A DNA stretch of 64,000 bases from Podarcis gaigeae (taxonomy: Eukaryota): the NCBI GenBank assembly GCA_964106915.2, contig OZ066917.1; one strand, 5' to 3'. The translations under genes were made by a program, and so were the position numbers. Below, in pieces: positions 6,966-40,158 of this stretch (position 1 is its first letter; every line of letters begins with the position of its first letter). The notes under the pieces were generated by a model. That model was not told the origin of the DNA. It did not search any database and was given only the letters and a program-made list of their open reading frames with translations.

Positions 6966-7417
6966 CTAATGAATAGTTCTTGTCTCAGAGTTCCTATAAA
7001 TTTCTTCCTCGTTCTCTTCCTCCTCAGAAGATGTGGCATTACTGGATGGCGTATGGAGGTGGTTCGGGGCCCCAGTGGCTTGGCACACATACCATTCATT
7101 GAGATTGGTGACCTGAGGAGAAAGGTTGACAGGGCGGCCCCTGCCAGAGTCCTGGAGAGGGGACAGAGGGGCACCCAGTGGTGTCCCAGTGGGTTGGTAG
7201 CCATGAGATCCTGGGGTAGGAGAAGGCGGTGGGGATTTGCAATGGATCTTCATGTGCTTGCGCAAGGAGCTCGGATGTGTGTAAGACTTGTCACAGCCTC
7301 TGACTTTGCAGAAATATGGCTTGTCACTGGTGTGGACATGAGAGTGTTTCTTTCTGTCACTGCTATTGGCAAACTTCCTGTCGCAGCCATCAAATTCACA
7401 TTTAAAAGGCTTCTCTC
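6966..7417 (-). CDS. ZIC5: ZIC5 coding exon 2 (zinc fingers 4-5 and C-terminus)
   Basis: Acceptor ttttctctttcag|GA GAG AAG at 7418/7417, phase 1 matching exon 1. Encodes [58 protein letters not shown]...[29 protein letters not shown]...RTIH*, the ZIC4/5-type fingers and ZIC5 tail. Confidence 0.96.
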
Positions 7418-9132: not shown

Positions 9133-12100
9133 AATTGGGTTTGCATGTGCGTTTGTCTGTCTAGAACCTGTTTCAGCAATCGCTAATCAGATTTGTCTGC
9201 TTTTAACTTCGGTCGACTCTATTTTTTAATATATATATTTAATTAAGGCCAGCAGCACTAGGTTTTGGGAAGAGGACCGACTTTCAAGGGATGCCCTGGT
9301 TGCTATGCTCATACATCCCGAAGCGAGATGCCCATGCCATCCTGATGTTTATTTTGGTATTGTCTCTGACGAAAGGTTCACGTCAGAGTTTAACCATTTG
9401 CAGATTATCTCGGTTTTAAGCCGAGAGATGCGCAGTCGAAAAGCAACGGTTCTCGCTGAGGAAAAGGCTGCTCGCTCCCTTTTGCGCGCCGAGAAAGGAA
9501 ACTTCACCGCCTACTAATTCGAAGCGAGGTCGGCGGCCCGTTTCCACAAACCGCGCGAGCGGTTCAGGGCTCAGGGAGGCAACAACTTGCGGCATCGATC
9601 AAGAGACAAGCCGCCGGCTATCTTTAAAAACAAAACCAACTACACGAAAGCCAAGCGCAGGGCGATTTCCCCCCACCACCATTGGGAGCTCAACTCGTTC
9701 TCAACCAAACAGAACAAAAAAAAAGGGGGGGAGAGGAAAACTCATTTGCTGCTTAAACCCAAACATACGATCCTTGATCTTGAAACTCAAATTTCTTACG
9801 TTAACACGAACCTATAGGGGAGAAGCCTGTAGGAGAGCGAGAAGAAACCAAGAAGGGCGCGAGATTGCAAAATTACGCACAGAAATGCCGAGGTTGCTCC
9901 GGACAATCTTAAACTCCCGTTTGGCTGCGCCAAATGAAGCGGGAGGCGGAACATTTTGACTCCCGGGCCTGGGAATCAGGGACCCCTCGGTTGGGCAGGA
10001 GGAACCTCCTGGAGAGAAGGGGAAAGGGCGCCTGAAGCCGCTCTCCTCGGCTTCCGGGGAGTCGTTTTGCCCTCGCCCGCAAGAGGAGAAAGTGGAGCTG
10101 TTAACGGGCAATAGAGCTGCTTATGCTACAGTCAACTCGAGCTCCCTGGCCAGGGCTTCCGTGCCAGCACGTGGCCGTGGAAAGAGTTCCCTGCCAGCAC
10201 CGGATCTTGCAAACCGTGCAGAAGCGTTTTCCAACCGTGTGCCCCTGCAACACTGTTGCAGAAAAAACACCGAGCAGCTTTCTGCGGCGCTCCTCGGCCC
10301 CTCCGGATCTTCACTCGTGGGTCTTTTGTCTGCAACAGGCGGTGGGGATCGGGCCGGCTTCGGATCTCCACCCAACCCTACTCGACCGACGAGCACCGGT
10401 CAGGAGGAGCGGCGAGGCTCCAGCTATTCCCCCACCTGCAGGAGCCTCGGCCCGAAGGAACCAGACTCGGATCTTCTTCCCAGCGGCAGTAGCAAGGGCA
10501 CTGTGTGGGCAGCCTCAAGCGGGCGAGGGCGAGATGAGCCGAACATCGGAGTTCTCCAGCTGGAAAAGGAGCTGTGTGAATGGAAGGACGGGCTGGAAAG
10601 CCCTCGCGAGGCTTTCTTCCTGCCCCTCCTCCCAGAGCACCAGCAGGGTTTTCCCCGGGCGAGAGCCCTACGATTACTGCGCAGAAACCAGCCCTTGCAA
10701 GTTGCAAGCATCTTCTTTAGGAGAGTCTGCAAAACTCCCAGTCAGGCCCTTCCGGAGCAGACTCGGCCTCCAAGGCCTAAAAGCACCGCGCTCCTCTTCG
10801 CTTGCAGGACAGATCCACCCCCCCACTCCCCGCTCCATGGGGCTGCGTGGGAGGGGGTGCTCAGGGCTCGCACAGATGGGCTCAACCCTGCGGATTCGCC
10901 ATCTAAAAATCGATAGCTTTTGCCGCCAGGGGCTATTTGCATGGGAGTTTGAACAGCGCGTTGCACCTTGTCCGCCTCGCCACCCCCCTTTCCTTTTCCT
11001 CTTTTTTTTTTTTTTTTTTTGCAACAACACACAATAAATCATGAAAACAATTAGGTGGAGCCCCCTCCGGCCTTTGCCCCCCCCTTCCCTATAAGCAGCC
11101 TCCGGTGGATAATATCTGTCTACACGCAACTATAAATCCCAACCGCCTTTTAAGTGAAGCCAAAAGGCCAGGGGCAAATCAAAACCAAGCTGTAAAAGAT
11201 ACAGCGCCATAAACAGAACTTCATTGAAATAGCTAGTCTGGCGGAGACACGCACAAAGGCACACCCGCGTCGCCTTCCCTTCCCATTTGTTCTCAAAAGC
11301 ACTATTCCGAATCGCTATAGCAGCGCTCCCTCCATCGAAACACACCTTTAAACCAACAACATATCTTTTAAAAGCCCTTGCCTATCACTTCCCCAAAAAC
11401 AACTAAGGGAGAAAACCTCCCCCCAGGGAAAGTAAAATATTGGTGGTCTCATTTGAAAAGTACCTCCTCTTGAGAGGCAACATGATCAAATCCCCTGACT
11501 CTCTCCTTCATATATAAAAAAGAAAACAAAACCCAAACAAATAAAAGCATAGGAGAAACTTTTTGAAAAGTGAATTGACCAGAATAAAGTTTGGGGTTTG
11601 CCCTTTCTTTCCACTATCTAAGAGGAGTACTGGACACCATAGGTGCCGGCTCCCTGGGCCCCTGGTGCCCGAGGACCCACAAAATTCACCATGAAGGGGC
11701 CTGGCCTGGCACCCACAAATTTCGTCGCCAGGACCATGTACGCTGCATAGCACCCACAGCCCCGGGCACCCACGGTCGCGGGGCCAAACTGACACTCCTG
11801 CTGGGCACACCGCGGGCCTTCGTGGGACTCCTCCGTTCTTCCCACTTTCGTGGGAGCTCCTAGCTATCCACAGCGCTCTTAGTTTGCCTGCTGAGGAATT
11901 CTGTGGCGCCGGGAAGCCTTCCTCGCTCTCACCAAAACCGCAGCGGGCACAACGCAGAAGACCCGCGAGCCATTCCCAAACCACGCATACACAGACAACG
12001 CAGACATATCAAGGAAGACTCACTCTCCCGCTGCAGCCCCAAAGAGCTGGTGAAATTACTTATTCATGACAAACGTCACACGTCTGAGGGTACGTAGGAG

Positions 12101-12200
12101 ATAGAGGAAGGAGGGAGGAGGGGGTAGAGAAAAGAAGTCAGAACCGCGCGCCGGAGAGACGCGGCCGGAGAAAGGCGCGCGCTCCTGTCGTGCCACCCAC

Positions 12201-13251
12201 CTGTGTGCGTCCTTTTGTGGATCTTGAGGTTCTCGGAGCGCGCGAAGACCTTCCCGCAGCCGGGGAAGGGGCACGGGAAGGGCTTCTCGCCCGTGTGCAC
12301 GCGGATGTGGTTGATAAGCTTGTACTTGGCCTTGAAGGGCTTCCCTTCGCGGGGACACTCCTCCCAGAAGCACACGTGGCTGCTCTGCTCGGGCCCGCCG
12401 ACGTGCTCCACCGTGACGTGATTGACCAGCTCGTGCATGGTGCTGTAGGTTTGCGAGCAGGGCGGCGCGGCCGCCTCGGCCTCGATCCACTTGCAGATCA
12501 GCTCTTGCTTGATGGGCTGTCGCATGTAGCGCAGGAAGGCGGCGGCAGCGGAGGAGGCGCCCGCAGGGTGGTGATGGTGTGGAGGCGCGTGGTGCGCATG
12601 TGCGGGAGGCGCTGGCGCCTGTTGCAGGACGGCCGCCGCCAAGTTGACCGGGTAGCCTTGCGGCGCGGCGCCGTAGGACGCTTCGGAGGCGGCGGCGGCG
12701 GCCGCCACGGACGACGGGCGGAAGGGCTCCACGCGCCCGTAAAACTCGGCAGCCGCCGCGGCAGCCGCAGCCACGGCCAGCCCCAGCCGCATCTGCCCGT
12801 TGAGCGGGTGGTGGCCTCCGGACGGGCCCGCCGGGTGGTCGTGCAGCCCCGGGAAGGCGGCGGCGTGAGGCTGCTCGCCGCCGGCGCCGTAGGTGCCCGC
12901 CGACGAGATGAACATGGGCGAGCTGGCCGGGTGTTGCTGCAGAGGCCGCTCGGCCCGCCGCGGCGCCGCGTACGAGGGGCTGCCGGCCGCGCCGTTGGCG
13001 CCCGCCTGCGACGACGAGGCGAAGGCGGCCTCGGCGCCGGCCGGGCTCAACTTGAGCGCCCCCGACGCCACGTGCTCCGGCCCGAAGGGGGCCGCGGCAG
13101 CCGGGTCCGAGGAGCCCAGGTCCCCCGGGTGCAAGGGCTGGAAGCCGCCACCGCTGGTGGCGCTGCTGCCTCCTCCGACGCCGCCATGCAATGCGGCCAG
13201 GTCGGCCAAGCGCAGGCTGGGGCTCCTCTTGCAACTCAGCGCGGGCTCCAT
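12201..13251 (-). CDS. ZIC5: ZIC5 coding exon 1 (from MEPALS ATG; a possible upstream in-frame ATG at 13392 adds 47 aa); ZF-NC and zinc fingers 1-3
   Basis: ATG in strong Kozak context gccATGG at 13251. Encodes [69 protein letters not shown]. Donor ACAG|gtgggt at 12201/12200. Spliced CDS 1503 nt (500 aa), or 547 aa from 13392. Confidence 0.95.
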
Positions 13252-13479
13252 GGCGCCGCAGCCCCGGGGCCCATCCAGGCGCGAGGGGGTCGCCTGGGCC
13301 GGCCCCGAGGGGGCGGTGGCCTTCCTCCCCCTGCCTGCCGCCGCCGAGGCTGTTGCTGCCGCCGTGGCCAGCGCCGCCGCCTTGCCAAACATGGAGCGAT
13401 TAAGCGGCTCTTTAACTTCTTTTGTCTGCTCCGTTTCCCAACTCGGCTGCTGCTGCCATCCTCTCCCCGCTCTGGCCTC

Positions 13480-13730
13480 CAGCGATTGGCAGAGCGCTCG
13501 GCACATTTGAGCGGCGCGGTTGGGAACCAGAGTTTGGAAATGTGCGCGGGTGGGATTGGAGGGAGGCCGGTGATTGGCAGAGGCCAGGCCAGCGCGATTG
13601 GCTCCCATTCAGGCCGGGCGCTCAGCGGGGAACCGCCCTCGCGCTCTTGTCTGCTTTCGCGCTCTTGCTCGCTCTCCCCACCCCCCCGACGCCCCTTTTC
13701 TCGCTCTCGCGCGCGTTTCTCCCTCCCCCC
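13480..13730 (-). promoter_or_regulatory. ZIC5 proximal promoter region (CpG island, four CCAAT boxes)
   Basis: ATTGG on + (CCAAT in ZIC5 sense) at 13485, 13555, 13573 and 13597, in GC-rich sequence just upstream of the ATGs. Confidence 0.65.
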
Positions 13731-13925
13731 CCCAAAAAAGTTGCACTTGCTGAAAGGAAGGAAGAAGGGGAAAAAGTTAGCGCCCAGCCGCAGAGGGAGT
13801 GCCAAGCGAGCGGCGTGCCAGGGGGAAACACGCGGCGGCACGCTTGCTTGGAAACTGTCAGGGAAGGCAGCCCGGATCTCGCTCCAAGCGCGCAAAGGAG
13901 AGTTGCTGCTTCCCAGTTACCTGGG

Positions 13926-14029
13926 ATAGAATTGTAGAGTTGGAAGGGACCCCCAGGGTCATCTAGTCCAACCCCCTTGAAACGCAGGAATCTTTCGCCC
14001 AGCGTGGGAATCGAACTCACGACCCTGAT
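13926..14029 (-). mobile_element. Short tRNA-derived SINE with CR1-like 3' tail
   Basis: Minus strand reads agggtcgtgaGTTCGATTCCcacgctgggc (B box)...gggttggactagatgaccctgggggtcccttccaactctacaattctat; sister copy at 40061-40158. Confidence 0.8.
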
Positions 14030-14269
14030 ATGAGCTGTTCAGTGAGGAACTGCCGCAACTTTTTGCCCAGCCTGAAACCGCTTTGCGAAACAAGGCTTCC
14101 TTCCACTGCCTACTGCGAGTCGGCATAATGTTCTTGCGGGCACATCAGCTGCAAGTTTTAGAGTGTTTGTGCCCGAACTTAAAAACACACCGGGAGGGCA
14201 TTTGCTCGTGTGAAAAAGGATCCTTTTTGGTAATGACATACTTTACACCTTGGTGAGAACGACATAAGG

Positions 14270-14393
14270 CACTTGGGAGGGTTTGAAGCAGAGGTTGGAT
14301 GGCCATCTGCAGGTATAATAGAGTTGACATTCCTGTGTTGCCGAGGGTTGGGCTAGATGACCCTGGGGTTCCTTCCAACGCTATGATTCTATG
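14270..14393 (+). mobile_element. CR1 LINE 3' end fragment
   Basis: aagcagaggttggatggccatctg...gggttgggctagatgaccctggggttccttccaacgctatgattctatg, a typical CR1 3' terminus. Confidence 0.75.
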
Positions 14394-16091
14394 TGTCTAT
14401 TTTTAGGACTTGGAGCCTAGGGCTCCGATGGCACCCACCAGACTGTAAGCGTCTTTGTAACTATTTATAGGTACACTCAGTATGCAAGGCGAGCGTCCTA
14501 AACGCCCTAAAATAATTGCGCCCTAAATGAATTGTATGGATGTAAATCGCACAAATAAATACAAACTCAACAAGTGGATGGGGAGCTATGTAATTCATAT
14601 ACAAGCGCATATGAAAGTCCCGTTGCTTTCATTGACTCTTCCTCTCCAGCATATGTGCTTAGGACCGAAGCGTCGATTGGAAGGAGATATTTTGGTGCAG
14701 TTACAATTATTACTGGCTTCAGAATAGATGTGAATATAAGCTGTTGCCTTAAACGCCGAGACACGACTGCTTCATGAGAGTTTCTTCGTGACTGTGTGGA
14801 AAGAACTACAACGATTCATTTCCCTAAGTAATGGAAATACTGTAACTGCTCCCATAAGCTGGTGTAAAAAGTATTAGTTTTGAGGGCGGGGTGGGGGGGG
14901 TTCATCTCAAACGGCTGAGTCTCGCAGGAGACGTCAGATCCGTTTCTCCATCTCAATGAAGCCTATAAATAGATCAGTCAGTTCGTGCTCTTTTTAAAAA
15001 CGTGGCTGATAGAATGAATGGTCAGGATGCGCCATCCTTACATTTGTACGATTCTTCTCTCTCCTTCCAACACTCCCGCCTCCACCGTTTCCCTGAACTT
15101 TCCGTCCTGTTTACACAGGAAAACCCTAAATCCCCGTGTACGCTCCTGCACGCCAGCGCTCTGGGAGGAAAGCCTGCCTTTGAGCTGCTGGGACTTATTT
15201 GAGGAACAGGTGTACAGTCCTCGGGGGAAATTTCGCGTGGACGTTTCCTGCGAGGATGCTGGTGGGGTCTGTAGGATACTGAGAAATGTACGCTTGCGGA
15301 TCGAACCGGAGCAGGGGTAGAAGTTGGCGCCCCGATCCGAATCCGTGCGTTTTCCCACCCCTCCTCATTTGGTACAAGTCCATTAATTTAAATAGATGTG
15401 TGGATTCTGTTGAAAACTTGGGAGACCGATTACAAATTAACCGAATTTACGAATGGAGCGGCAAACACCTGCACATTTCCTTAAAAAAAAAAATCAAATG
15501 CGCCAGAAAAGCGGGGAGTGGGTGGGACTGAGCTTTCAGCTCTGAAAATAAAGGAGGAGGGACGTCGCCTTCCTTTTTTCGCGACCGGCAAAGCTGAACA
15601 AAACTTAGTCGCCGCAGCGGGAGCAAGTCCTGGAACAGAAATAGGCAGTAGTATTTCCATAATGCAAAGTAGCAGCGCCTGAAATAGCACCGAAAAGCTC
15701 TTGAGGCGGCGCTAGCACTTGGTTCAACACGCCGCACTGCATGGTAAAGGCTGACTTTTTGGCAACGCGTCTTTCCAGTAGTTCTGCGCCTAATTTGAAA
15801 CAGGCGGAGACGAGGTGAGCCAATTTCAGCCCTCGGAGTACATGCAGTCAGACGCATTCCCCATTTTTAAGTTAAAAGAGAGAGAGAGATGGAGAATATG
15901 AGAGTGGGAGAAAATCTTTCTGTTAGGGACCACGTGAAAATCGCCAACAGCTCTCCAACTAGCCCTTAGGTCGCCGAGTTAGCGCATCGCGCAGGCGGCC
16001 AGGCGTTTGATACATTCATTTCAGGGGTTTCCATAAAGAGATCTTGCAACCCAACTATTAACTTGCGAGCTTCACGTCCTCTTTTCGCCTC

Positions 16092-16175
16092 GTGCAACCT
16101 CGCGCCTGTTTTCTCTGAAGTAAGACCCACTGCCTCCAATGGGTCTTATTCCCTAGTGTGTTTAGGATTGCAGCT
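16092..16175. mobile_element. ~90-bp palindromic MITE-like copy
   Basis: tgcaacct...gaagtaagacccactg...caatgggtcttattccc...tttaggattgcagc followed by ttta. Confidence 0.65.
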
Positions 16176-17094
16176 TTACAGACACCGTACAAAGTTAAAA
16201 GACACACACATAAGCATACCGGTGTGATGCAACTCACGATTATTATTATTTTGTCCCCAAAGCCGGCTCCGCAGGGCATCAACGTGTTTCCAAATTCATT
16301 TTGAAGCTTGATTGCTGATCAATTTTGATTTTTTGGGGGGGGGAAGGCTACAGTATGGGGGTCTTTTAAAAAAGAGGGGGCTGGGTTGCCTGATAGATAG
16401 TTTTCGAATGAAATGAAAGCTTTCGAAACAGGAATTTCTTGTTTTTTTAAGTATGAAAAATATATTGAGTTATACTTGAATTTCCGATATGTAATGGTTT
16501 AAACGGGGCGCGGGGAGGGGGAGTTCCAAACCTGAATAATAGTTTGCAAGTTATGTCCTGGCCTCCGTGTACAACCCTTGTTAAACGCAGCGTGATATGG
16601 ATCTGTCATCGATTTAGTGCGTCTTAATTCAAATATATGTCGCTGATCAATTCCCTGGTTTGTGGGGACTATAAACAGCGGAGAGATGGCTGGGTGGACA
16701 GACAAACATGGATGGCAGGTAGTGAATAAGGCTTTTAAATCGTGGGTTATATCGTGAAAGTTGTAGTGGACTTGCAGGCAGATTAATTCAAACCTATGAT
16801 TTTCCCCAGCTGCTATCAGTGAAAGGGTTATCTTTGCGATAAGGCAACTTCTGAAGAAGCATGCTGTTTCTTGCATTAAATTTGCATACTGTCAGCTGCA
16901 CTGCGAGGGCACGCACGGGAGAAACCGTGCACGTTACAAACAAGAGGCACGGTCCAGCAAAACTTAAGCACTTTATTCAGCAATGTTCCCATTGAAGCCA
17001 ATGGGGCTTATGAGCAATTCGCGCTGGCTGGGTGGTGCCGCAAATGTTCCATACAGATAGAAAGGGCACTGTGGACCATTCTAGCCTCTGAATA

Positions 17095-17222
17095 AGGGAC
17101 ATGGCCTTATACCGAGCCAGGCCATTGGTCTATCTATCTCAGTATTGCCTACACTGACTGGCAGGCTCTCCAGGATTTCAGACAGGGGTCTCTCCTGGCC
17201 CTTCCTGGAGTTGCCAGGGATT
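17095..17222 (-). mobile_element. Squamate SINE fragment with CR1-like tail
   Basis: gccttataccgagccaggccattggtctatctatctcagtattgcctacactgactggcag..ctctccaggatttcagacagggg; related copies at ~19753-19905 and ~54318-54590. Confidence 0.6.
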
Positions 17223-19223
17223 TTAAGATTGCTGTAAGTCTCTTCCTGGTCAAGGCAGAGATGTGCACCGTAATTCCGAAATGTATGTTATTCCAAGTAA
17301 GCGAACAAACACACTATTTGATTCTAAACCGTCAATCTATTAAATCTGGAATCTCTTCTCCTCCTCACGTTTTTTTGCTGTCCCCCCTTCCTCCCCCGCT
17401 TCTTTACTTCCCCTCTTTTCTTTTCTTTTCTTTTCTTTTCGTTTCTTTTCTTTTCTTTCTTTATTAATTTCAGTCCACGGCACGTTTAGCAAATCAGCTC
17501 TCCAGAGTTCGTGTTTTTGTTTGCTTGCTGCTTACGGCATTTGTTTGACGGCGGCATTATGCAAATATATGCTAATGATCACGAAGCCCATTTGCAAGTA
17601 GTTGTCTTTAGTGCACACATGTTATTGATATTTAGCGGGAGGGGGGACGATATTCCAGAAGAGGGAAAATGCCTTCTGGGGAACAATTAAAACGAGAGAG
17701 CAATTAACAGCTCTTCTCAAGAAGATCTTTTTTTAAAAAAAAAAAAGGAAAAAACAGCCGTGCAGGCAGTAGAGGCACGGGATTCTTCAGGCAGACAAAA
17801 CAAACAGACACACACACCCTTGAAAAATCCTGCGCGCACACTTGCACGGGAGTAAGTCCTGTTGTATAGCTTTGGACTTAACTTCCGTGCAAACCTGCTA
17901 AGCTGTTCTGATGAAGGCGCGGATTCTCCTCGGGACGCGCGCCTTGGATTCCTACCCACGAGACGACGCAGAGGTCAGCTCTGCGTTGTACTTACTTAGA
18001 CGTAGCGTTCATGGAAGCCAGCACAGCTTTGTTTAGGAAAGGCAGGTCTCGTCGAGGGTAGCTGGAGGGGAGGGCGCCCCTCATTTTCCTCCCCCGCCAG
18101 CACCCTCGGAGTCTGCCGGCTGCGCTTGGATCCTCTCTCCTCTTATCCGCCACCCCCCCCGCCCCCTCCTTGATGGTGCTGCGCGTAAAGGAAAAGCTGG
18201 ACAACCCTCGCCCCAACCAGCTACCCAACATCCCTAAATGAAACCAGTAATACACTCAGGGAGCTGAGCCACGGGCTCTTCGTGGCTTGTCTAACCACTC
18301 TGGTTGTTCGGTTCTTCTGTGTCGTCCCCCCCCCCCACCCTCTCTCTCTCTTCCTCTCTCCACCTCTGCCACTTAACATGACCCGACCTGTCAGGTGTGC
18401 CTGGTGGCTGCCAAGCTGGCTTTCGGCGACAGGCCCAAGCACTTGCACAAAGCGCTCTGGAGAAGGGCAGCAGGAGGAGGTGGAGGAGAGCGCACCATTG
18501 GAGAGGAGGCAGGAACGGGTTAAGAGTGTTCCTTCTTCAGTAGGGCTCTTGCCTCGTCAAGGGACTAGTTCAAGGCTTCCTAGAGGGCCCGCGGGCCCTT
18601 TTGCCTTGCTCAGAAGTGGGGTCTCGGGGGCGCAGCCTGATACGCGAGTGGGTTTTTCTCAGAAGTGATTTTCACGGGAAAGTGGGTGATAAGCAACTTG
18701 CCAAGGGAATGCGTTTTTCCATATGAAAATTTACTGGCGCACGGAAGCAAAACTGCCCAAATATGTTGTTTAATTCCTAGATCGATTAAACTACCTTGGA
18801 AACAAATCATTTTTAAAGGGTGGGGGAGAGTGGTTTCCTTTCAATGAACCCTCTCTCTCCCTGTGACATATTAAGGGGTTTGCTTACAACACCCACACAC
18901 CCCTTCACCCCCTCCACACATACACAATTGCTGTCTGTGCCTCTTACCATTGCATATTTGTGCCTAGCCTGGCAAAACATAGCTGGTTGTTTCAGTGCCA
19001 GAGGTGACTTGTTCCGCCTTGCTAAAGAGGGGCTCCACAGATCCAGTGGCACTCCTCTTCCTTCGCCAGTGCATAGATCCACACCAAACAAATGACTCTA
19101 ACTCATGTCTTTTATCGACAATTTTAATGTTCCTTTTTATTTTTTGGAAACCGCTTAGAGGTCCTGTTACAACCAAGCGGTGTGAATTTTGTTAAATAAA
19201 AACAAAGGAACATCACCAACAAG

Positions 19224-19480
19224 AGTGCAAGCCTATACATGTCCACAACTCTGCTCAGAAGGACGTGCTATTCCGTTCAATGGGGCTTACTCCCAGGTAA
19301 GTGGGTGTAGGATTGCATACTAAAATAACTCATGTATGTTGTGGGGAATGTCCTGCTTTAGTCTGGCGGGCATACGCAGCCAAGTTTCAAGATCAAGGCT
19401 GCAATCCTGCATGCACTTACTTAGAAGTAAGCCCCATTTAAACCCGCGAGACTTCCAAGTAAACATGCATAGGCTTGTGA
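19224..19480. mobile_element. Two ~90-bp palindromic MITE-like copies
   Basis: 19224-19320 (...ttcaatggggcttactcccaggtaagtgggtgtaggattgca) and 19397-19480 (ggctgcaatcctgcatgcacttacttagaagtaagccccatt...aagtaaacatgcatagg). Confidence 0.7.
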
Positions 19481-19752
19481 TCTTCCTTACATACTTGGGA
19501 AGTGGGATGACATAAAGAAGGGCATATAATAAGTATTTCTGATGGTTGGTATATGTATATATAAAATGTCCTATGACAGATATCAACCATCTGGATGATT
19601 TACCCCTGGGGAACGTCATCCCGCTCCTTTCCTTTTGTCCCCCAACATTGCCTCCGAATGCTGACGTGGAACCAGAGATCTGAGGACATTTTATGGAGTA
19701 TAGAAATGCGAAGGCTTTTAGAGAAATCACAAGCACACCAACTTAAACAGAA

Positions 19753-19905
19753 GAAGTTGCCTTACACGGGGTCAGATAATCGGTTCATGTAACTCGATAT
19801 TGCCTAAAACACGAACCAGCAGGTGCTCTCCAGGGTTTCAGATAGGGAGTCTTTCGGAGCCCTGTCATGGCGAGATGTTGGAGGCTGGACTATGGACTTT
19901 TGGCC
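19753..19905 (-). mobile_element. Decayed squamate SINE fragment
   Basis: gaagttgccttacacggggtcagat...gctctccagggtttcagatagggagtctttc, similar to the 17095 copy. Confidence 0.5.
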
Positions 19906-22900
19906 CTTCCTGCAGGTCCCGAGTACTTTAGTGGTTTTCTGTTTCTAGGTTATTTGATTAATAACGATTTTTCCTTTGGCTGGGGAAATTACAACACTGA
20001 GACTGCAAACGTTTGTAAACATATCATAACTTCCACTGAACCCGATGGAATTTAATTCTGTGTAAATGTGCTTGGAAGCTTGCTCGGTTTGGAAACTATT
20101 TTAGAAGATCCTCGGGCAGCTCAACTCCTATGCACGTTTGCCTGGAAGTAAGTTGCACTGGCATGGTGGACTTACCCAGTTAACAGTCCTACACAGCCTC
20201 TACTCACGACGGGTGGAATGGAGTTCAACGGGGCTTACTCTCAGGTAAAGGGAGATAAAGTGGGAGACTAAAAGCTGAGATTCCTTAAACTGCATCTTCC
20301 AAAATTAGCAGCCAAACTGCAGTGCCATCATTCTCAGCTACTGGAAGGAACTGCGCCATATTGATCAGCTTTTAATCACTTTTTTTAAAAAAGTGCATTA
20401 TAAAGCTATGCGATCATAGAGCAACAACTGCTTGATCTACTACTTCACGTTTACTGAGAAATAATTCCCCCTCTATTCAGTGGGTCTTGCTCATCATCGG
20501 CAAGTGTCTAAAGGACTGCAGCCTTAGAGAACCGAAACAAAGCTGTCACGCTCAAGGGGGTACAGGAGGGCCATTGATGAGTTGATAATGCTATTTCTGA
20601 TAGTCTCGCTATCCCATAATTCCTCCCTCCCCCCCCCTTTTAAAATAATGCGTAGTGTGCACATCTACTTTCAGGAGGGAAAACGAGGGAGAAATTCAAT
20701 GCGTGTGTGCGGATACACATGTGTATCTATAAGCCTATATAGGCGCATCCTTCCGGTTCCCTCTATTTTCCCCCCACGGTCAACGATTGGAAGAAGCTGT
20801 TCCGATAAATCAAACGGTGACACTTTGACGGCTGGCCTTGTATAAGCAATATGGTTCCCATATGGCCCCGTTATTTATGAATGACAGCAGAAAGTGTATT
20901 ACATATTCGCTCGAGAGCGGGAAAGGAGAGCGCTTTACTTACGGACAACTTGCCCTGCTTCCCCTAACCCGCAGCGGCAGCCTCCCATTGAAACAGAGAG
21001 GAGCCGAAAAAGGATAGGGCAAGGTAAATGGAGCAAAGTCCTCAGGGAAGCGTCCTTTTTAAAAAAATGAAAATAATAAATCCAAAACTAGCGACCAAAA
21101 GACAAGCAAACAAAAACAAGCAAACCAAAAACAAAGAACTCCCTAAGCTCGATTTTGCAAAAATGTAGCATTCATTCCACATGTCTTCTATTTCAAAGGC
21201 GGAGTTCAGCACTGATTCAACTCTCTCCCATTGAAATGAATGGTTCCTTTTGCCGGGATCGTGGCCCGCGGTTAAAACACACACGCACCAGGCAGAGAGG
21301 TTTGTCTTGCGGATTATGCGCGTCTTAGCAAAACCAACACAAAGCAGGCCTTATCTTCCTTGAGACTCCTCTCTCCCCAAAACCCACCGCTGCTGCATAA
21401 CACTGAAACCGCCGGCCACGGCGGAGAATAATAAATTTTAATAGTGGGAGGGCATTTCGCTGTATTTCTCTGTGGACACCCTAGGCGTTGTAGTGAGCCT
21501 GGGCTTTTTTTAAAAAAGAAAAACCAAAACCAAAAAAACTCAGGCATTTAAAAGTTACAACTTTGGCTGAGACTTTCATTGACTTCCCACTTTGCTTGTA
21601 TATTTGGCTTCTTGTAGACTAAAACCTGACAAAGCGTTTACAAAAAAAGAAAAGAAAAAAGAAAACTTATTCCAACATGTCCTTTTACAGAAGGAGGCTC
21701 TCTGCCCCCTGCTCTTCCCGCTCCAGCAGCACATGCCGTCTTCAGAGGTCAGAGGTCGAATGGCCTAGAAGTGGCTGAGCGAGGGGATATCAAAGGTGAC
21801 CTGCAACTTAATATCCTGTTGATGAGCCTGTTGAATTTACGAGTGTCTGTGATACAGACAACAATCGTGGGCAAGTGAGGAGCCACTGAAGAGAGCTTGT
21901 CCACCTCCCAGTCTTTTCCGGTGAAGCAGAGGAGGCTGGGCCTCGACAGGATTTCTCAAATCAGGATTTGGATTTTACAGGAGAAAGACACCTCTTCTGC
22001 ACACATTTCTGTCTTGTACAATTTAACAACAACAGCAACAACAACGCCAGAAGCCAGCACCATATTTGCTAGGAAACAAATCTAACTGATTTCAGTAAGA
22101 AGTAAAGGAAGCATAGAAGCCTAACAACCATATTGGATCAGATCCAGCCAAAGTTTGATTTCAATAGGGGTGAAAAACCATTCATAGCTTGAAATCAAGG
22201 GACGGAACAACCTGACCCTACGCATACTTACTCGGGAGTAAGATGCTAAATCACTTGCATATTAACTCCTAAGTCAGGGTGCATGCAGTTTCAGAACTCA
22301 TTGCGCTTGGCTGGCTTCTGCCTGTTTGCTTGGGAGTAAATCCCATTGACTTCGCCCGAAAGTATTTTCGACTCAGGCTGAATCAGAGGTGCATAATTTT
22401 GCCAGTAAATTTGATTGAGCACAGTGGGACCTCTGAAGTAAACGTGCATAGGATCGGGCAACAAGGGGAGGCTGGATTCCAGACGCTTTTTGGGTGGGGG
22501 AGCTGAAGTCAATGGGATTTGTTTGGAAGCAAGCTTTCCATTGCAAATATAATTCTTATGCAGTCACCTACACAGAGACAGCTCTGTCCTCGGGTCAAAG
22601 GAAAGCCAAGCCACAGCTAAATAAGCTCCATCAAGGGGACCCAGCAAAGGCGCAGCCCTAGAGATAAACGGATACCGTTGAGTTCCCCACCCCACACACC
22701 CCCAGATGCCAGTTGCAGGGGAACGGTAGCTCAGAAGCGGCAGATCATTGCAAAATAACGAAGACAGCGAGAGACACTGAGCGAAGCTGCCTTTCCTTCC
22801 TTCTAGGCTTGGAGAAAGCAAAAAGCAAAAAGCAGAAGCGTGGAAGGAAACTTACAGACCAGGGGGGGCCATGTTTCCCCAAGAGCTGGTGGCGATGGTG

Positions 22901-23531
22901 ACAGACCGGTCACGTATCTAGCAGGCTGTAGGCCGGGCCCCCCAAGAAAGCTACTCTGGCTGAGGAGGAATCCGATCCCTTCTCTCCTTCCCTTCGCCCT
23001 GCTAACCCACTTCCCGAAGGGATTTTGACTGCTGGCCGCTTTCTTCCCTCGCAAAGAATGAGCTTTAAAGGCTGTACTCCGGCCAATGGCCCATGAAAGG
23101 GACGGCAGGTTTCTTTCTTGGCTCCTCTTCTCCCCCCACTCCCTTCCTTTCCTTCTCACCCCCGTGACATTGGTTGGGGGGGGGGGGAGAAAAGGAGGCT
23201 TTTTTTTTTTTTGGCTGTTTGGAGAGAAATAAAGCACTTCTGGGGAGGGGGTGGAAGGACGGCGATCTAGCTTTGAACTTGGATCAACTCCTCTGTTTCC
23301 TACCGGGAGGGGAGAAATGGGAAAGTTTGAAAGAAAAGCGGCGTCCAGCCTGCGGGGGACTCCGGCCGGAATTTACGAATTTACCTCCCAAAAGTGTCCT
23401 GAACAAGCCGCCGAGGCCGTTAGACAGCGGGGGAGGGATCTGAGAGAAAGGAAAGGAGAGAGAAAGAAACGTGTGGGTGGGTGGATGTGTGAATGAGACT
23501 TGAGGCTACATTCAAAAACTGTTTTAGCCAT

Positions 23532-23535
<4 letters not shown>

Positions 23536-23602
<67 letters not shown>
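23536..23602. repeat. Compound (TG)n(AG)n microsatellite
   Basis: Seen directly. Confidence 0.95.
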
Positions 23603-23605
<3 letters not shown>

Positions 23606-25279
23606 CCCCCTTCTGTCGAAAAATATTCTAGGAGCCTTGTCACAGTTCCTTGAAAGTGTTCCACTATAAAGCCGATGGGATTTACCTACAGGCGGACGCG
23701 CCTTAGACCAGGGCCTAAAGGAACTGCGCGCAAGGCTCCGTGGTGTTTATCTTCCTCCTCCAAGGTCTCTGGATGTCGGAAGGTGCGGGGGGACCATTTT
23801 AGCTCTGCTTCTCTTTGCCAGCGCTCAAACCCTGGAGAGAAATAGGTAGGTGGGTGGGTGTGTTGGGAAGTCAGGCCCAGATAAACGCAGGCTGGTTGGG
23901 TCCATCGAAGGGCGGGGGGGGGGAGGGGAGAAGCGCCCCACCACCTCCATCCTGCAAGCTGGCAAGGGGCACTGAGGGAGCTGGCCGAGGGCTGCGGACA
24001 AGGAAGGGATGGAGGCAGTTTGCGATTTGGAGGAAGGAAGAGCCACGCAGCCGTGAGGTGTGCAAGGCTCACGCTCGTTCTGAGAACAGCGAAAAACGGC
24101 TCTTTCAGCGCCTAGATCCACGCATAAAGCTATACCAGGCAGCTAGAAAGAAAAGAGTCCGTTTATGCAGCGTTTCCAATGGACTAAAATGCATCTTCGT
24201 GCCAAAATAAAAATGTAATTTAATCAAGGAAGGAAATCATGGATGATGTACTATTTATATGTGCGCATTATGCATGTGCGTGGTACATCTAAATAGCTCT
24301 CTGTACCTGTATCTCCTTCCTTCCCCCTACAAGGACGCAAAATCGGTTTGGAAATGGGCCTGTGCAGGTGCAAAAGAATACAGCAGAAAGCGTAAAAAGG
24401 TTTTGTCTTATGCTAATATGGCCTAAGGGGGGGGGGGAATAGAACACACCCCCAACCCAGGAGCAACCCCATTTCCTTTTCTAGTTTCCATTCTCATAAG
24501 ACCACAGAGAACATTTGTATTCCTAAATGGGGGAAAAAGAAAGGCCGCCGTTATTTTTCCTAAAAAGACGGGGAGATATTTCTGGATACTGCCCTTTTTA
24601 TTTCCTCAGCAAATTTGCTTTGGATTGCAGGTTTGGGTGGTTTTTTTTTTTTTTTAATTAATCTAAACAAGCTCATTCAGGAAACAGATCTGTCCTGGCA
24701 GGAGTGTGTAATGTGTATTTTCAGTTAGCAATCTTAGAATCTAGTTTGCAAATTTCCGTTCGTGAGGCTTTGCGATGCGATTTGTTACAAACACACACAA
24801 ACGCAGCGGCAAAAGGTTGCAATCACGGGTTGTGGCTTTTTTCAACACCCCTTCCCCGCTATGCAGCTCGCTCCCATGCCGCCTCCTGACAACCGCCCAC
24901 TAACCCGCTCTTTTCTTTTACACTACTCCGAGACATCTCTATTTACACCCGTGTCAGCAGCCTCCCAGCGAAGTCCATATCCTGTTGGAATCGATGGGAG
25001 GGAAACTCCCGTCGGTTTTTTAGCGGATCTGAATGGCACCTTCGCTCGGAATCTTTCACAAAAGGCACACGCAGATATTCTCCATCCCAGATAGTCTCAT
25101 CTGCTGTGGTTTCCCTCTCCTTTGACACCCCCTCGCCCAATCTCTCTCTTAAAAAACAAAACAAAAAAACATGCCTTGCTCTCTCTCTCTCGCCACCCCA
25201 AAGGGTCCTTTTGGTCCGGTTTCCCCGCGAGAAACGCACCCGAGAGGTAAACTGGATCTCGTTGGGAACCGATCCCGCC

Positions 25280-26221
25280 CCCCTCCCCACCGCGCCCCCC
25301 TCCCCCAACCCACCCTCTGGCTGCCCTATGATCCGAGCGCTGCCCCTCTCTCGCCTCTGCCCGGGGCGGGAGCGGAGGGGAGGGGGAGAGGAGGGGAGGC
25401 GGGTCGGACCAGGGGACGCGCGAGTGGCTATTAGCCCGCCTTGGGGGGAAGGCTTGGATTGATGGGGCCGGGCCGACCAATGAGACGGCGCCAGGAGATC
25501 GGCCTGGCTGCTGTTAAAGGGGGCGGTGGGAGAGGAGCTGCCAGTCCAGCCTAGGAACTAGCGGGAGAGGCTGGGAGGAGGAGGAGGAGGAGGAGGAGAA
25601 GGGGTGGCGAGGAGGGGGGGATAAAAAGCAGCCACAGCAGCGGCGCCCACCGCAACCAGCAGACGGAGGCGAGAGGCGAGCAGAGGGAGAAGCCGGCCAG
25701 CGCCCAGGGAGGAGGACCGACCCGCCCCCCCCCCCGCCAAAAAAGAGGAGGAGGAGGAGGAGGAAGGACCGCATCTCACGGCTGGAGCATCTCCATGGCG
25801 GGCGCTGGCGGCGGTGCCTGAGTGGGACTCGCGCCCGGGCTGAGGGACGGACCTTGGGCGCTCCACTCCCCCCTCCGCCCCTCCGCCTGTGTTATTGTTC
25901 TGGGCTGCCTCTCTCTCTCTCTTTTTTTTTTCTTTTACAAATCCGCATCTCTCCCCCTCCCCTCCTCTCCCCCTCAATCTCGTCCCCTCCTCCTCCTCCT
26001 CCCCAACTTAAAGCGAGCGAGGTTGTGGCGAGGGAAAAGGCGCCCGATTCCTCCCTCTCGTGAGGAGAACGGCGGCGGCGGCGGCGGCGGCAACTTTGGA
26101 GCCCGTGAGGCGGAACCGAATGGCGGGCAGAGCGGGAGGCGGAGGAGGTGGCGGCAGCGGCAGCGGAGGAGAAGAAGAAGAAGAACGGGAATAATATATC
26201 TATATACACACACATATGTGT

Positions 26222-26256
<35 letters not shown>

Positions 26257-26956
26257 ACAGAAACAAGGGGTGGTTAGAAGAGTGGGGGGGGACCCGAATA
26301 TTTTAGTGGAGGGGCTGGAGAAGGCGGGGAGGGGGGCACCGGGGCGGGGTAGTAGCGCAGCGGAGAACCGTGTGTTTGTTTTCTGAGCGGAGAGTGTGCG
26401 TAGCGCGCGAGCGGAGAGCCGGCCACTCGCGCGCGCCCCGGCGTGTGCGTGAGCGCGCGCGCGCGAGGGAGTGTGCCTATATATCTCCTCGCCTGTTTGT
26501 GTGTGAGAGAGAGAGGCTGTCGGTGTGGCTGTGGCGGTGTGACATCTCTTCGCCAGAGGGCTTGTGTGTGTGGTACTGTTGTTGTTGTTGTTGTTGTTGT
26601 GGGTAGCTCTTTCCCCCCCATTTCTCCCCCCTCCTTCTCAGGGAAAGGCGAGTCCCCTCTGCGTCCCTCCCTCTCCCCCCCCACGCCCCTCTCCTCTTCC
26701 CTCCCTCCTCGGCTCCCTCTCTCTCTCCCTCCCCTCCGCCCGCTCCCCTCTCTGTGCCTTCTTCCCTCAGAGCTGCCCGCCCGCCCTCGCCTCAGCTGCT
26801 TTAATACCCTTCCGCTGGCCGCCTGCGCCTGAACTCTCGTCGTCGGCGCGCGGCTCTTTCTCCCGCTCGCGCAGCAGAAGAAGAGGAGGAAGTAGAAGAA
26901 GAAGAGGAAGACAGAGAGCCCGTCGCTCGGACCCTCGCCGGGGGCTCCTGGGCGGC
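25280..26956 (+). promoter_or_regulatory. ZIC2 promoter / 5' UTR CpG island
   Basis: Very GC- and CpG-rich; CCAAT at ~25477, GC boxes (GGGGCGG at ~25520 and ~26341), GGA/GGC tracts, directly upstream of the ZIC2 ATG. TSS not determinable from sequence. Confidence 0.6.
26222..26250. repeat. (TA)n microsatellite inside the ZIC2 upstream CpG island
   Basis: Seen directly. Confidence 0.9.
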
Positions 26957-28049
26957 ATGCTTCTGGATGCGGGGCCGCAGTTCCCGGCGCTGGGCGTGGG
27001 CTCGTTCGCCCGGCACCCTCCTCCTCCGTCGGCGGCCGAGATGCAGGAGCGCGAGCTGAGCCTGCAGAACAGCTTCGTGGACTCGGCAGCGGCGGCGGCG
27101 GCGGCGGCGCACCTGGGCGCCTTCAAGCTCAACGCGGCGGCGGCTGCGGCGGCGGCGCACGAGCTGTCTCCGGGCCAGGGCTCGGCCTTCAGCTCGCAGG
27201 CGCCCGCTTACCCGCACGCGGCGCATGTGGGCTCCTACTCCGCGCCGCCCTTCAACTCCCCCAGGGACTTCTTGTTTCGGAGCCGGGGCTTCGGCGACGC
27301 GGCGGCGGCGGCCGGCGGCGGCCAGCACGGGCTCTTCGGGGCCGCGGCGGCGGCGGCGGCGGCCACGGGCAGCCTGCACCACCCGCACGCCGAGGCGCAG
27401 AGCCACCTGCTGTTCCCGGGCATCGGCGAGCAGCACGGCGCGCCCGGCTCGCCCAACGTGCTCAACGGGCAGATGCGGCTGGGCTTGCCCGGAGAAGTCT
27501 TCGGCCGCTCGGACCAGTACCGCCAGGTGTCCAGCCCGCGCGCGGACCCTTACTCGGCGGCGCAGCTGCACGGCCAGTACGGGCCCATGAACATGAACAT
27601 GGGCATGAACATGGCGGCGCACCACGCGCACCACCCGCACCATGCCCACCCGCACCATGCCCACCCGCACCACCACCATCACCACCACCACCCGGGGGCC
27701 TTCTTCCGCTACATGCGCCAGCAGTGCATCAAGCAGGAGCTCATCTGCAAGTGGATCGACCCCGAGCAGCTGAGCAGCCCCAAGAAGAGCTGCAACAAAA
27801 CTTTCAGCACCATGCACGAGCTGGTCACTCACGTCTCGGTGGAGCACGTCGGCGGGCCCGAGCAGAGCAATCACATCTGCTTCTGGGAGGAGTGTCCCCG
27901 CGAAGGGAAGCCCTTCAAGGCCAAGTACAAGCTGGTCAACCACATCCGCGTGCACACGGGCGAGAAGCCCTTCCCGTGCCCCTTCCCCGGCTGCGGGAAG
28001 GTCTTCGCGCGCTCCGAGAACCTCAAGATCCACAAAAGGACGCACACAG
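26957..28049 (+). CDS. ZIC2: ZIC2 coding exon 1 (ZOC, His tract, ZF-NC, zinc fingers 1-3)
   Basis: Starts [20 protein letters not shown]; contains [67 protein letters not shown]; donor ACAG|gtcagt at 28049/28050, phase 1. Confidence 0.97.
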
Positions 28050-30363
28050 GTCAGTCCACGAGGGATTTCACGCTCTTTGCCGGGTCGGAAAGGGTGGTTG
28101 GTGGGTGTGAGATTGTGGGGAAGGGAAGGGAAGGGGGCATTGCGACACAAATGCAAAGCAGGAGAATCCTTTCCCCAGAAACCTCCCCGTGCATGCTCCA
28201 GCACACGAATCTGCTTACTCGGAAAGGTGTTTAATTTTGTCCAAACCCTTTAAAGGAAGTGATGCTTTATGTGATCGTAAAAAATAAACACGTAAGAAGT
28301 AAAATAAAATTGCTTCCAAATGTCTGCCTTCTCTTAAGGCTGCCTGAACTGGGCCGGGCTCCTCGGGATACTTAGGGGAGATGCAGTGGGATCAGATACT
28401 TAGGGGAAAGTAAGATACACTGGCATCAGTCAGTTGCCAAGGGAGTCTCTCCTTCAGAGTGGGACGCCTGCCTTCAAAGAAGCAAAAACCGTCCGAGCAG
28501 ATAACTGGAAATATACGAAGGGACCTTACAGGTTAATCCTGAAGAGAAGCGAGTGTTGTTCCTGTCGGTATGGTCTACTTTTAAGGAAATCTGTGAAGCT
28601 GAGCAGCTGACTAGGAAATCTCTTCCTTTGAAATCCACCGGCTTCATTTCCAAATATATTCAGGTCTGAGGTGCTCCTGCAATGAACGCCGCGTTTCCAG
28701 AAAATGGGTAAATAAGTGGGTAGTTTAAAAAGGCATAGTTGTGCCGTTTTATAAATGTGATGGTAGGAATCTAAAACAGAGCTGAATTTTACATTTTGTA
28801 TTTTAGACCTATATTCTAGAAAAACTACCCTTAAGAGGGAGGGGGGAGCTCTTTTCCTTTCTCCGCCCCCCTGGTCATTTCACCGCGCTTTTCAGGGACT
28901 GCTTTCCATTAAATTGAAATGGAGTGAGGCGGGACCATAAAATTTTCTCATTTGCAAAAGTGTTTTGAAAGTCTGACTTGGGGCGCCGGAAGGCGGTTTT
29001 CCACTAGTTTATTATTTTTGTTAAAGCAACATGTAATAAACAACAGAGGATTTAAGGTTGATAAACTTCCGGGGGTAGGATTCCCCCTCTTCCTAACGCT
29101 GCCACCCCAAAATGAGGACTAATGGGTGAGAAAGGAGGCCGCGTTTCTGGGTGATAGAAATCGTTTGAGTCCAGGTAGTGGAATCAAACAACTGCGTTTC
29201 CCAGGCTCCTAGATAATTCTACTTCAGCCGGCCAGATTTCTACTGGAGCATTTTTATTTTTATTTTTGGGGTCCGCACCCTACCCCGCCCCGGGGGAAAA
29301 AGAAGACCAGCAAATATTTGAGCAATTTCCGGGCATCAGTGTTGACTGAGAGAAAGGAGCAAAACTCTGTGAGCCTTTCTGGTTGTGTTGCTGAAGTGCT
29401 AAGAACGGGTTTAGGTGCGAGACGGGCTTTAACAAGGTTTAGCAAATCCGAGACGTTGATTTGCATGGAGATGGCCGCGTTTTGCGGGGGGGGGGGCGGC
29501 TCTGAGCGGGTGTCTTTAAGGAACAATTTAGGTGCTAATGGAATTTCGCGTTAAATTGCGCGTCTCTCCCACCTCCGGTTTCAAGGGCGGGGGAAGGATC
29601 CGGCGGTGGCTGTGTTTGAGTTCTCACACCTACAAATTGCTCGGAAATCTGGCGAAGGGGCGAAGAAGCTCTAGGAAAATTCCAAGGGAGGGTTCTGCAT
29701 GTGTTTTTTGCTTCGGTTTCTCTCGCCCTCTTCGCCCCCCATCATCCCCAGCGGATATTTTGAGAAGTATTCCAATGTCCTTGCATGAAAGGGGAGAAAA
29801 ATACTGCAGCAGCCTGCTCAGATCTGGAGTCGTTTGCGGCTTGACGCGGTTTAAACAGGGGGTGGGGGTTGGTTCTGGTCCGGTGGCTGTTTTTAAATGC
29901 ACGAACTGGGAAAGGCTCCTTGGCCTGGCTTTTAAATGCAATACCAGTTGGAATGAAAACAAAAGAAATACATATCCCGAGACACGCAAATCTCTTTATT
30001 GGGTTCCTTGGGGAGTCGCGCTTTTAAAAACAATGACCACAGACCTGAGGACTTTCTTGAATTCCCCCGTTTTCCTTGTATTAGCTGGGACCCTGGCCCG
30101 GTATTTCTTTCCGAAGCTGCATAATCCCCTGCACAACTCACCCAACTCATTTCCCTCACATCCTAAATTCGACTGAGCTCCTGCGGAATTCTCAGACGAA
30201 CATTTAAATATGAGATGCCAATGAAAAGAGGCACATACGAAAAGGAGGTCGCTTTCCTTTAGCTGACCAAAAAAAACACACCCGAGGATGTTCAAGTTTC
30301 TTCCAAGATCTCACAGCCACTAAATGTTTGTTTTATAGTTCTTGGTAAAAGATCGCTTTTTAG

Positions 30364-30708
<345 letters not shown>

Positions 30709-31048: not shown

Positions 31049-31399
31049 GTCCACGAATCCTCCCCGCAAGGCTCCGAGTCGTCGCCCGCGGCCAGCTCCG
31101 GCTACGAGTCGTCCACTCCGCCGGGCTTGGTGTCCCCCAGCGCAGAGACCCAAAGCACAGCTGCCAGCAACCTGTCCTCTGCAGCGGCGGCCGCGGCTGC
31201 TGCTGCCGCCGCCGCCGCTGCGGCCGCAGTCTCGGCGGTGCACCGGAGCAACAACGGCGGAGCGGGAGGAGGAGGCGGCGGCGGCGGGAGCTCGGGCGGC
31301 GGCGGAGGGGGCAGCGGCGGCGGCGGAGGAGCGGGCAGCGGCGGAGCCAGCGCCAGCCACGGCGGCCTCACGTCCAACTTCAACGAGTGGTACGTCTGA
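31049..31399 (+). CDS. ZIC2: ZIC2 coding exon 3 (Ser-rich, poly-Ala, poly-Gly C-terminus)
   Basis: Acceptor ctggcag|GTC CAC; encodes [30 protein letters not shown]...A16 VSAVHR...SNFNEWYV*. Total CDS 1608 nt = 535 aa. Confidence 0.96.
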
Positions 31400-31571: not shown

Positions 31572-31705
31572 NNNNNNNNNNNNNNNNNNNNNNNNNNNNN
31601 NNNNNNNNNNNNNNNNNNNNNNNNNNNNNNNNNNNNNNNNNNNNNNNNNNNNNNNNNNNNNNNNNNNNNNNNNNNNNNNNNNNNNNNNNNNNNNNNNNNN
31701 NNNNN
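31572..31705. other. Assembly gap (134 N)
   Basis: Run of N. Confidence 0.99.
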
Positions 31706-32492: not shown

Positions 32493-32656
32493 NNNNNNNN
32501 NNNNNNNNNNNNNNNNNNNNNNNNNNNNNNNNNNNNNNNNNNNNNNNNNNNNNNNNNNNNNNNNNNNNNNNNNNNNNNNNNNNNNNNNNNNNNNNNNNNN
32601 NNNNNNNNNNNNNNNNNNNNNNNNNNNNNNNNNNNNNNNNNNNNNNNNNNNNNNNN
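32493..32656. other. Assembly gap (164 N)
   Basis: Run of N. Confidence 0.99.
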
Positions 32657-40060: not shown

Positions 40061-40158
40061 AGGGTCGAGGGTTCGAGTCCCACGTTGGGCAAAAGAGTCA
40101 GGAGGTTGGACTAGATGACCCTAGGGATCCCTTCCAACTCTACCGTTCTATGATTCTA
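40061..40158 (+). mobile_element. Short tRNA-derived SINE with CR1-like tail
   Basis: agggtcgaggGTTCGAGTCCcacgttgggc...ggttggactagatgaccctagggatcccttccaactctaccgttctatgattcta. Confidence 0.8.

Follow-up and report, generated by a model that had tools for sequence, protein, structure and literature searches.

This analysis concerns the genes ZIC2 and ZIC5 in a 64,000-nt stretch of assembled sequence from the lacertid lizard Podarcis gaigeae (contig OZ066917.1), referred to throughout as the window and used for all coordinates unless another record is named. The two genes form a divergent pair of a subclass A and a subclass B gene with five zinc fingers (ZFs) and a ZF-NC, i.e., a bigene pair, with both reading frames intact (exons joined locally) and with 274 of the 275 residues of the N-terminal part of ZIC2 identical to those of Zootoca vivipara. 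The segments coding for ZF1-3, at the 3' ends of the first coding exons, constitute the arms of an inverted repeat and have, very probably, been homogenised repeatedly by gene conversion. The features of the locus are:

12201..12445 (-): ZIC5 arm, 3' end of coding exon 1 with most of ZF1, ZF2 and ZF3, homogenised (ZIC5 identity from homologs)
27805..28049 (+): ZIC2 arm, 3' end of coding exon 1 with the same zinc fingers, homogenised (ZIC2 identity from homologs)
12201..12314 (-): perfect tract of 114 bp, codons 45-81, partner 27936-28049
12315..12317 (-): putative protected island between the 56- and 114-bp identical tracts, with the ZIC5-specific Ile44 and the linked silent Leu43 difference (codon 43 third base, codon 44 first base)
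12201..13392 (-): ZIC5 coding exon 1, CpG island; in-frame ATGs, first at 13392, second at 13251
6966..7417 (-): ZIC5 coding exon 2 (ZF4-5 and C-terminus), CpG-poor, unhomogenised
26957..28049 (+): ZIC2 coding exon 1, CpG island
30455..30618 (+): ZIC2 exon 2 (ZF4-5), unhomogenised
31049..31399 (+): ZIC2 coding exon 3
12446..27804 (no strand): interval between the arms, comprising the upstream region common to the two genes and the N-terminal coding part of each; uninverted, as it is collinear with that of Crotalus, Gekko, birds and Xenopus

The first-pass annotation of the window had described the arms (12201-12445 on the minus strand, 27805-28049 on the plus strand) as a gapless alignment of 245 bp with eight mismatches, and a recount returned the same figures, with perfect runs of 23, 7, 33, 3, 1, 56 and 114 bp. 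A repeat search found them to be the longest inverted repeat in the window (12199-12452 and 27798-28051, 96% identity, 15,345 nt between). Among the 81 arm codons, 75 are identical, five differ non-synonymously (N/T, T/S, S/N, V/I, I/V) and only codon 43, which adjoins the I/V codon 44, differs synonymously, i.e., one silent difference in 76 shared codons; seven of the eight mismatches fall in the five non-synonymous codons. The identity stops just past the GT donors, as first observed, and the ZF-NC immediately upstream carries the three silent differences already listed there (CGA/CGC, CAA/CAG, CTG/CTC). The contrast with exon 2 also stands as a strong divergence, although its count needed correction, silent differences being present at 15 of 32 (not 31) shared residues in the first 37 codons and at 24 of 47 overall. 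Both arms are CpG-rich (CpG observed/expected ratio, o/e, 0.86-0.90) with a GC content at third codon positions (GC3) of 0.93. Given that ZIC5 exon 2 is CpG-poor (o/e 0.35, GC3 0.51), it is a weak control for convergence by GC3; we rejected it as the sole control, and other species were therefore needed.

Silent sites in orthologs, linked partners and unlinked paralogs

At the DNA level the comparison spans squamates, birds, a frog and one fish, in six species-level comparisons that include ZIC2 and ZIC5 of Crotalus tigris, Gekko kuhli, Xenopus laevis (same chromosome) and Poecilia, and a bird pair composed of two species (ZIC2 of Calonectris, ZIC5 of Indicator). Compared with their Crotalus orthologs, the window genes show silent differences at 13/81 and 14/79 codons, as against 1/76 between themselves, so that the lizard paralogs are closer to each other than lizard and snake orthologs are. 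Throughout the segment, orthologs differ silently at 12-15 codons among squamates and at 24-37 in comparisons with birds and the frog. Silent quartets of the window with each other pair supported grouping by species over grouping by ortholog 7/0 (Crotalus), 6/0 (Gekko), 11/0 (birds) and 22/0 (Xenopus); in the comparison with the snake, seven codons have one state in both lizard genes and another in both snake genes, and not a single codon groups by ortholog. The longest identical ZIC2/ZIC5 runs measure 114 bp in the window, 97 in Crotalus, 94 in Gekko, 170 in Xenopus, 53 in birds and 22 in Poecilia. The Xenopus tract has many A/T-ending codons (GC3 0.72) and six codons found in no other sequence of the set, and lies between saturated flanks; its run-permutation test gave P 0.00025 (0.023 after Bonferroni correction). 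Such a test is inapplicable to the window pair and to ZIC1/ZIC4 of Crotalus, which are homogenised across the whole segment.

When codons were drawn independently from local usage (the codon-usage null), 21.6-31.7 silent differences were predicted for the window pair with one seen (P 1e-11 or less). The lowest of these predictions, 21.6, comes from the segment's own GC-rich usage (P 8e-12).

We regard the four paired genes of C. tigris, i.e., a snake rather than a lizard genome, as the decisive control for linkage dependence. Its second head-to-head pair, ZIC1 and ZIC4, whose arms lie 15.7 kb from each other, has no silent difference in 80 codons at a GC3 of only 0.765 (32.6 expected, P 1e-21), the single differing base in the segment being non-synonymous. 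With one base different over ~255 bp (L004:10742-10984(+) and L014:10964-11206(+)), this is the most complete homogenisation seen. ZIC1 of C. adamanteus, an independent assembly, gave the same result and is one base from C. tigris ZIC4. The first-pass annotation had named an equally similar unlinked ZIC1 as contrary evidence. What was found instead is that the closest true paralogs, on separate Crotalus contigs, differ silently at 24/80 (ZIC1/ZIC2) and 26/74 (ZIC4/ZIC5) codons, share runs of only 20-21 bp and lie near the codon-usage null. Informative silent sites within Crotalus supported the linked pair 20 times and the subclass 0 times. Thus, the two members of a linked pair share their silent sites, which are unlike those of other species and of unlinked paralogs. 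Nor is the process peculiar to this locus or species, since Xenopus, other squamates and the ZIC1/ZIC4 pair show the same.

Trees of the segment were made from all 243 sites and, since these mix ortholog-specific amino-acid sites with converted silent sites, also from the 65 codons whose amino acid is invariant across the 14 sequences (16 of the 81 codons left out, all rows kept). In the 65-codon tree partners pair within species, with support of 91/94 for the window and 97/97 for Xenopus, and with Crotalus ZIC1 identical to ZIC4; bird and fish sequences are unresolved. Approximately unbiased (AU) tests on these codons reject a ZIC5 clade (p 0.001), a ZIC2 clade (p 0.0008) and a squamate-ZIC5 clade (p 0.005), and the all-site tree rejects subclass B monophyly (p 6e-5). 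The predicted clustering of the segment by species and not by gene is thus borne out by silent sites, in quartets and tree alike. Exon 2 behaves differently, as it separates ZIC1 and ZIC2 from ZIC4/5 at 99/98 and an AU test rejects uniting the window pair. Since exon 2 groups by ortholog, the paralogs are old and only the ZF1-3 segment evolves in concert. The ancient tandem split between ZIC1/2/3 and ZIC4/5, assumed from the outset, agrees with this tree and test, with class-concordant protein termini and with the literature, where the ancestors of ZIC2/ZIC5 and ZIC1/ZIC4 arose by a tandem duplication predating the vertebrate genome duplications (PMC7403390).

Probable conversion between linked arms and its alternatives

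We consider it very probable that the ZF1-3 segments of head-to-head ZIC pairs, an inverted repeat with arms 12-16 kb apart, have been repeatedly homogenised by non-allelic, non-crossover gene conversion between linked arms. The intrachromosomal conversion of inverted arms proposed at first is supported by the silent-site grouping together with the contrast of linked and unlinked genes. Linkage dependence, exon-limited tracts with tract-like boundaries and polarity are observed, and what was found corresponds to interlocus conversion in four respects, i.e., paralogs closer than orthologs, an older duplication, tract-like clustering (in Xenopus) and a similarity that is not convergence of base composition.

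Several results weigh against this interpretation. Taking the segment as a whole, the Gekko and bird pairs do not deviate significantly from the null given by their own codon usage (P 0.17 and 0.16), their run tests lose significance after correction, and the bird comparison combines two species. Run tests are only nominal for Crotalus ZIC2/ZIC5 (P 0.0015) and Gekko (P 0.005), and within-species support in the 65-codon tree is weak for both (63/85 and 77/83, respectively). The all-243-site tree still unites the squamate ZIC5s (91/92), because of the non-synonymous differences. Poecilia zic2a/zic5 (L007:3943-4185(-) and 10811-11053(+)) has no tract and 21/71 silent differences, even though its arms are the closest (6.6 kb) and CpG-rich. 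Proximity plus a CpG island is therefore insufficient, and the account of the mechanism incomplete. Moreover, the CpG o/e of the Xenopus arms is only 0.54-0.58. Gekko (a 94-bp tract, very GC-rich) and birds (53 bp) are thus no more than suggestive as conversion cases.

The same data bear on two explanations that dispense with any exchange of DNA. Two CpG-island exons under strong protein constraint might have converged through GC3 or codon bias, and the high GC3 of both window arms, as well as the Gekko pair (GC3 0.94-0.98) with its non-significant null, fit this idea. High GC3 alone indeed compresses silent divergence, as the bird exon 2 pair (L012, L005; GC3 0.92) has 6/46 silent differences and a 51-bp run, and fish ZIC5 exon 2 is equally near bird ZIC2 (5/32), which makes conversion and convergence inseparable in bird exon 2. 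Yet the window segment departs from the expectation of its own usage, partners have A/T-ending codons in common in Xenopus and in Crotalus ZIC1/ZIC4, and unlinked paralogs of the same snake remain near the null. Codon-bias convergence is refuted for the window, both Crotalus pairs and Xenopus, and we hold it to be highly improbable in general. Silent sites might instead have been frozen since the duplication by an overlapping function (an exonic enhancer, a splicing or RNA element, ultraconserved sequence), given that codons near the donor could hold splicing signals and that ZIC loci are rich in conserved non-coding blocks. Frozen sites predict conservation among orthologs, but these differ at the 12-15 and 24-37 codons given above while paralogs change together, which leaves this explanation hardly conceivable.

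Other routes would exchange sequence by different means, or mimic exchange. Inverted repeats do flip in yeast (PMC9731477), so repeated reciprocal crossovers (a flip-flop of inversion and re-inversion) could be envisaged, as could RNA- or cDNA-templated repair. The inversion of the shared promoter interval that was predicted at first is fixed in no species compared, since lizard, snake, gecko, two birds and frog all have the inter-arm interval in one and the same orientation. N- and C-terminal classes, assigned by alignment scoring (a crude ZOC pattern proved unspecific for chimera detection and was replaced), agree in 326 of 328 classifiable ZIC proteins, the outliers being P0022, with a marginal score, and the chimeric P0397, a UniRef protein record of the owl Otus sunia in which a ZIC4-type part before ZF1 is joined to ZIC1-type ZF4-5. 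This record could be a crossover product or an assembly misjoin across near-identical arms. The collinear interval and concordant ends mean that crossovers do not fix. Repair from RNA would be expected to act preferentially on ZIC1/ZIC2, the more similar pair, and to cross the exon junction, but the signal tracks physical linkage (20/0) and extends no further than the donor, and we see only a slim chance for either route. An assembly collapse or polishing error, by which bases of one paralog were placed on the other, deserves consideration as near-identical arms are prone to mis-mapping and the owl record may be such a misjoin. A collapse would, however, have erased the five paralog-specific residues in the tract, which match orthologs of other reptiles; the pattern recurs with its own letters in four other, independent assemblies; C. 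adamanteus ZIC1 is a single base away from C. tigris ZIC4, and two Xenopus assemblies agree on ZIC5; and mis-polishing presupposes near-identical arms, which is the finding itself. An artefact is thus very unlikely.

As for how gene conversion might operate here, a germline break in one CpG-island arm would be mended with the neighbouring arm as template, whether on the same chromatid or its sister, possibly aided by recombination at promoter-like features, near which recombination occurs in a snake and in birds (PMC10369914). Purifying selection on ~95% of the protein and on the indel-free 245-bp frame may keep identity above what homologous recombination needs, and every conversion would reset the silent sites, so that the arms remain able to recombine. 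Such a loop of constraint and conversion would have kept the pair from escaping conversion since before the vertebrate genome duplications, while exon 2 would have escaped because its homologous stretch is shorter, interrupted by an indel and identical at ~75%. Where a conversion overwrites a paralog-specific residue (e.g., Ile44 of most amniote ZIC5), selection would mostly remove the product, or else tracts would stop at mismatches; crossover outcomes, with an inverted interval and swapped N-termini, are presumably selected against. A broader scenario strikes us as doubtful, namely that conversion is tetrapod-wide and still active, with ZF1-3 of co-expressed partners co-evolving, amino-acid changes passed across, and an occasional crossover giving rise to promoter-interval inversions and chimeric ZIC proteins.

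Protein traces, known systems and further observations

At codons 78-80, snake and bird ZIC5 have one common state (the frog nearly so), and window ZIC5 carries the ZIC2 state that other ZIC5s do not, so that these codons, at least, appear to have been copied from ZIC2 to ZIC5 in the lizard lineage. The state of codon 68 is unique to the two window genes; a change arising in the lizard lineage therefore reached both copies. Lizards and snakes split ~170 My (million years) ago, and about seven silent changes per copy since then, with one residual difference, would roughly place homogenisation within the last ~10-25 My. Co-occurring amino-acid changes in linked partners lend support to conversion as well, judging from the sequences, i.e., Tyr26 common to ZIC2 and ZIC5 proteins of birds and turtles, and Ala31 common to Xenopus S ZIC2 and ZIC5 and likewise to Ranitomeya ZIC1 and ZIC4. 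In ZIC5 of Anolis sagrei (P0008) the start of ZF1 is ZIC2-type for ~18 residues, extending upstream of the segment converted in the window, which suggests a longer tract in anoles. Codon 33 of squamate ZIC5 is patchy, as repeated conversion could make it: Lerista, Pogona, Varanus, snakes and two geckos have Gln there, and the window, Elgaria, Anolis, Gekko and Paroedura have Glu as in ZIC2.

The five paralog-specific residues inside the window tract are the ortholog states of other reptiles. Ile44, at helix position +5 of ZF2 (standard C2H2 numbering), which is not a canonical base contact, is kept between converted tracts in nearly all amniote ZIC5 sampled, together with the linked silent difference at codon 43; its persistence would fit either selection or tract termination at a mismatch. 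The initial proposal that selection maintains such residues agrees with the window, whose residues match orthologs, but fails in Xenopus, where ZIC5 has ZIC2-type residues at codons 22, 24 and 44, and the constraint is therefore not absolute. A ZIC2-like WEEC (as opposed to WEDC) in window ZIC5, also cited at first as a sign of conversion, was a mistaken clue and has been discarded, WEEC being the usual ZIC5 state outside mammals.

Placental ZIC4 (Ala21, Gln33) and therian ZIC5 (Asp29) have private residues at the protein level, and in many sauropsids the ZIC4 protein is the same as ZIC1 over the whole segment. As a protein-level hint, conversion may have waned in mammals; within the broader scenario doubted above, it may have done so in therians when PRDM9 moved recombination off CpG islands. 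Were mammals to convert these genes as well, ZIC disease loci would be exposed to a mutation route so far unrecognised.

Interlocus gene conversion with mosaic evolution is a known process, and the ZIC genes are a new case of it, notable for the age of the duplication, the recurrence from frog to lizard and the involvement of both ZIC pairs. The divergent arrangement of vertebrate ZIC2/ZIC5 and ZIC1/ZIC4, intact here, is known from a study that does not mention sequence exchange between partners (PMC7403390). No report of ZIC conversion was found in the searchable literature, with subscription papers and book chapters thinly covered, so that absence is unproven; the 'ZIC' of PMC2724270 refers not to these genes but, as a PANTHER family label, to ZXDA/ZXDB. 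Conversion confined to the DNA-binding-domain coding region of linked transcription-factor duplicates is described for Dlxa/Dlxb of Capitella teleta and for engrailed/invected of hexapods (PMC3199776). The Dlx pair, with a 150-bp tract, is inverted as well, but lies tail-to-tail in one annelid species, and mammalian Dlx pairs are stated to be unconverted (PMC3199776), whereas the ZIC genes are head-to-head zinc-finger genes of several vertebrate lineages, and both of the pairs that genome duplication produced are affected. CYP1A1/CYP1A2 and chicken CYP1A4/5 (PMC3199271) share the head-to-head layout, a common promoter region and exon-limited conversion in separate lineages, yet they encode enzymes and duplicated 300-350 Mya (million years ago), and the ZIC genes had already duplicated before the vertebrate genome duplications (PMC7403390). 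BMP8A/B, DDX19A/B and TUBG1/2 (PMC2720389) are likewise mosaics, with some exons concerted and others divergent over long times, but for just over 100 My, and that screen of mammalian pairs does not mention ZIC. Paralog-specific amino acids persist among converted silent sites also in ATP1A1 R/S of Leptodactylus (10.1101/2020.08.04.234435), a genus-level tandem duplication where selection was shown by experiment, whereas in ZIC selection is only inferred, and broken in Xenopus. The flip/flop region of Saccharomyces (PMC9731477) also has a homogenised inverted repeat flanking an interval (24 kb in yeast), but with 4-kb repeats and a real inversion polymorphism, as opposed to ZIC arms of 245 bp in essential coding exons with no inversion seen.

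Few vertebrate duplicates that still exchange sequence appear to be as old as the ZIC genes, which do so in both of the head-to-head pairs that genome duplication left behind, and which offer a natural test of whether strongly constrained duplicates ever escape conversion. Phylogenies of ZIC zinc fingers and dates from synonymous divergence (dS) are distorted because ZF1-3 follows the neighbour and not the ortholog, and short-read mapping, assembly, probes and guide design at reptile and frog ZIC loci can confuse the partners. Residues surviving in converted tracts (ZF2 Ile44 in amniote ZIC5; ZF1 positions 8, 11, 22 and 24) are candidates for the protein difference between subclasses A and B.

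The shared upstream interval (16555-25400) contains conserved non-coding blocks near 16560, 17400-17700, 20780, 21540-21790, 23000-23250 and 25350, some common to birds and one to Xenopus, which are candidate enhancers. Inverted 52-bp repeat fragments, 90% similar, lie at 13926-13977, just upstream of ZIC5, and at 40100-40151, and are probably ends of short or long interspersed elements (SINE/LINE). N runs occupy 31572-31705 and 32493-32656. Nested imperfect palindromes at 60996-61209 (73-bp arms at 79% and 49-bp arms at 80%) probably represent an element resembling a miniature inverted-repeat transposable element (MITE).

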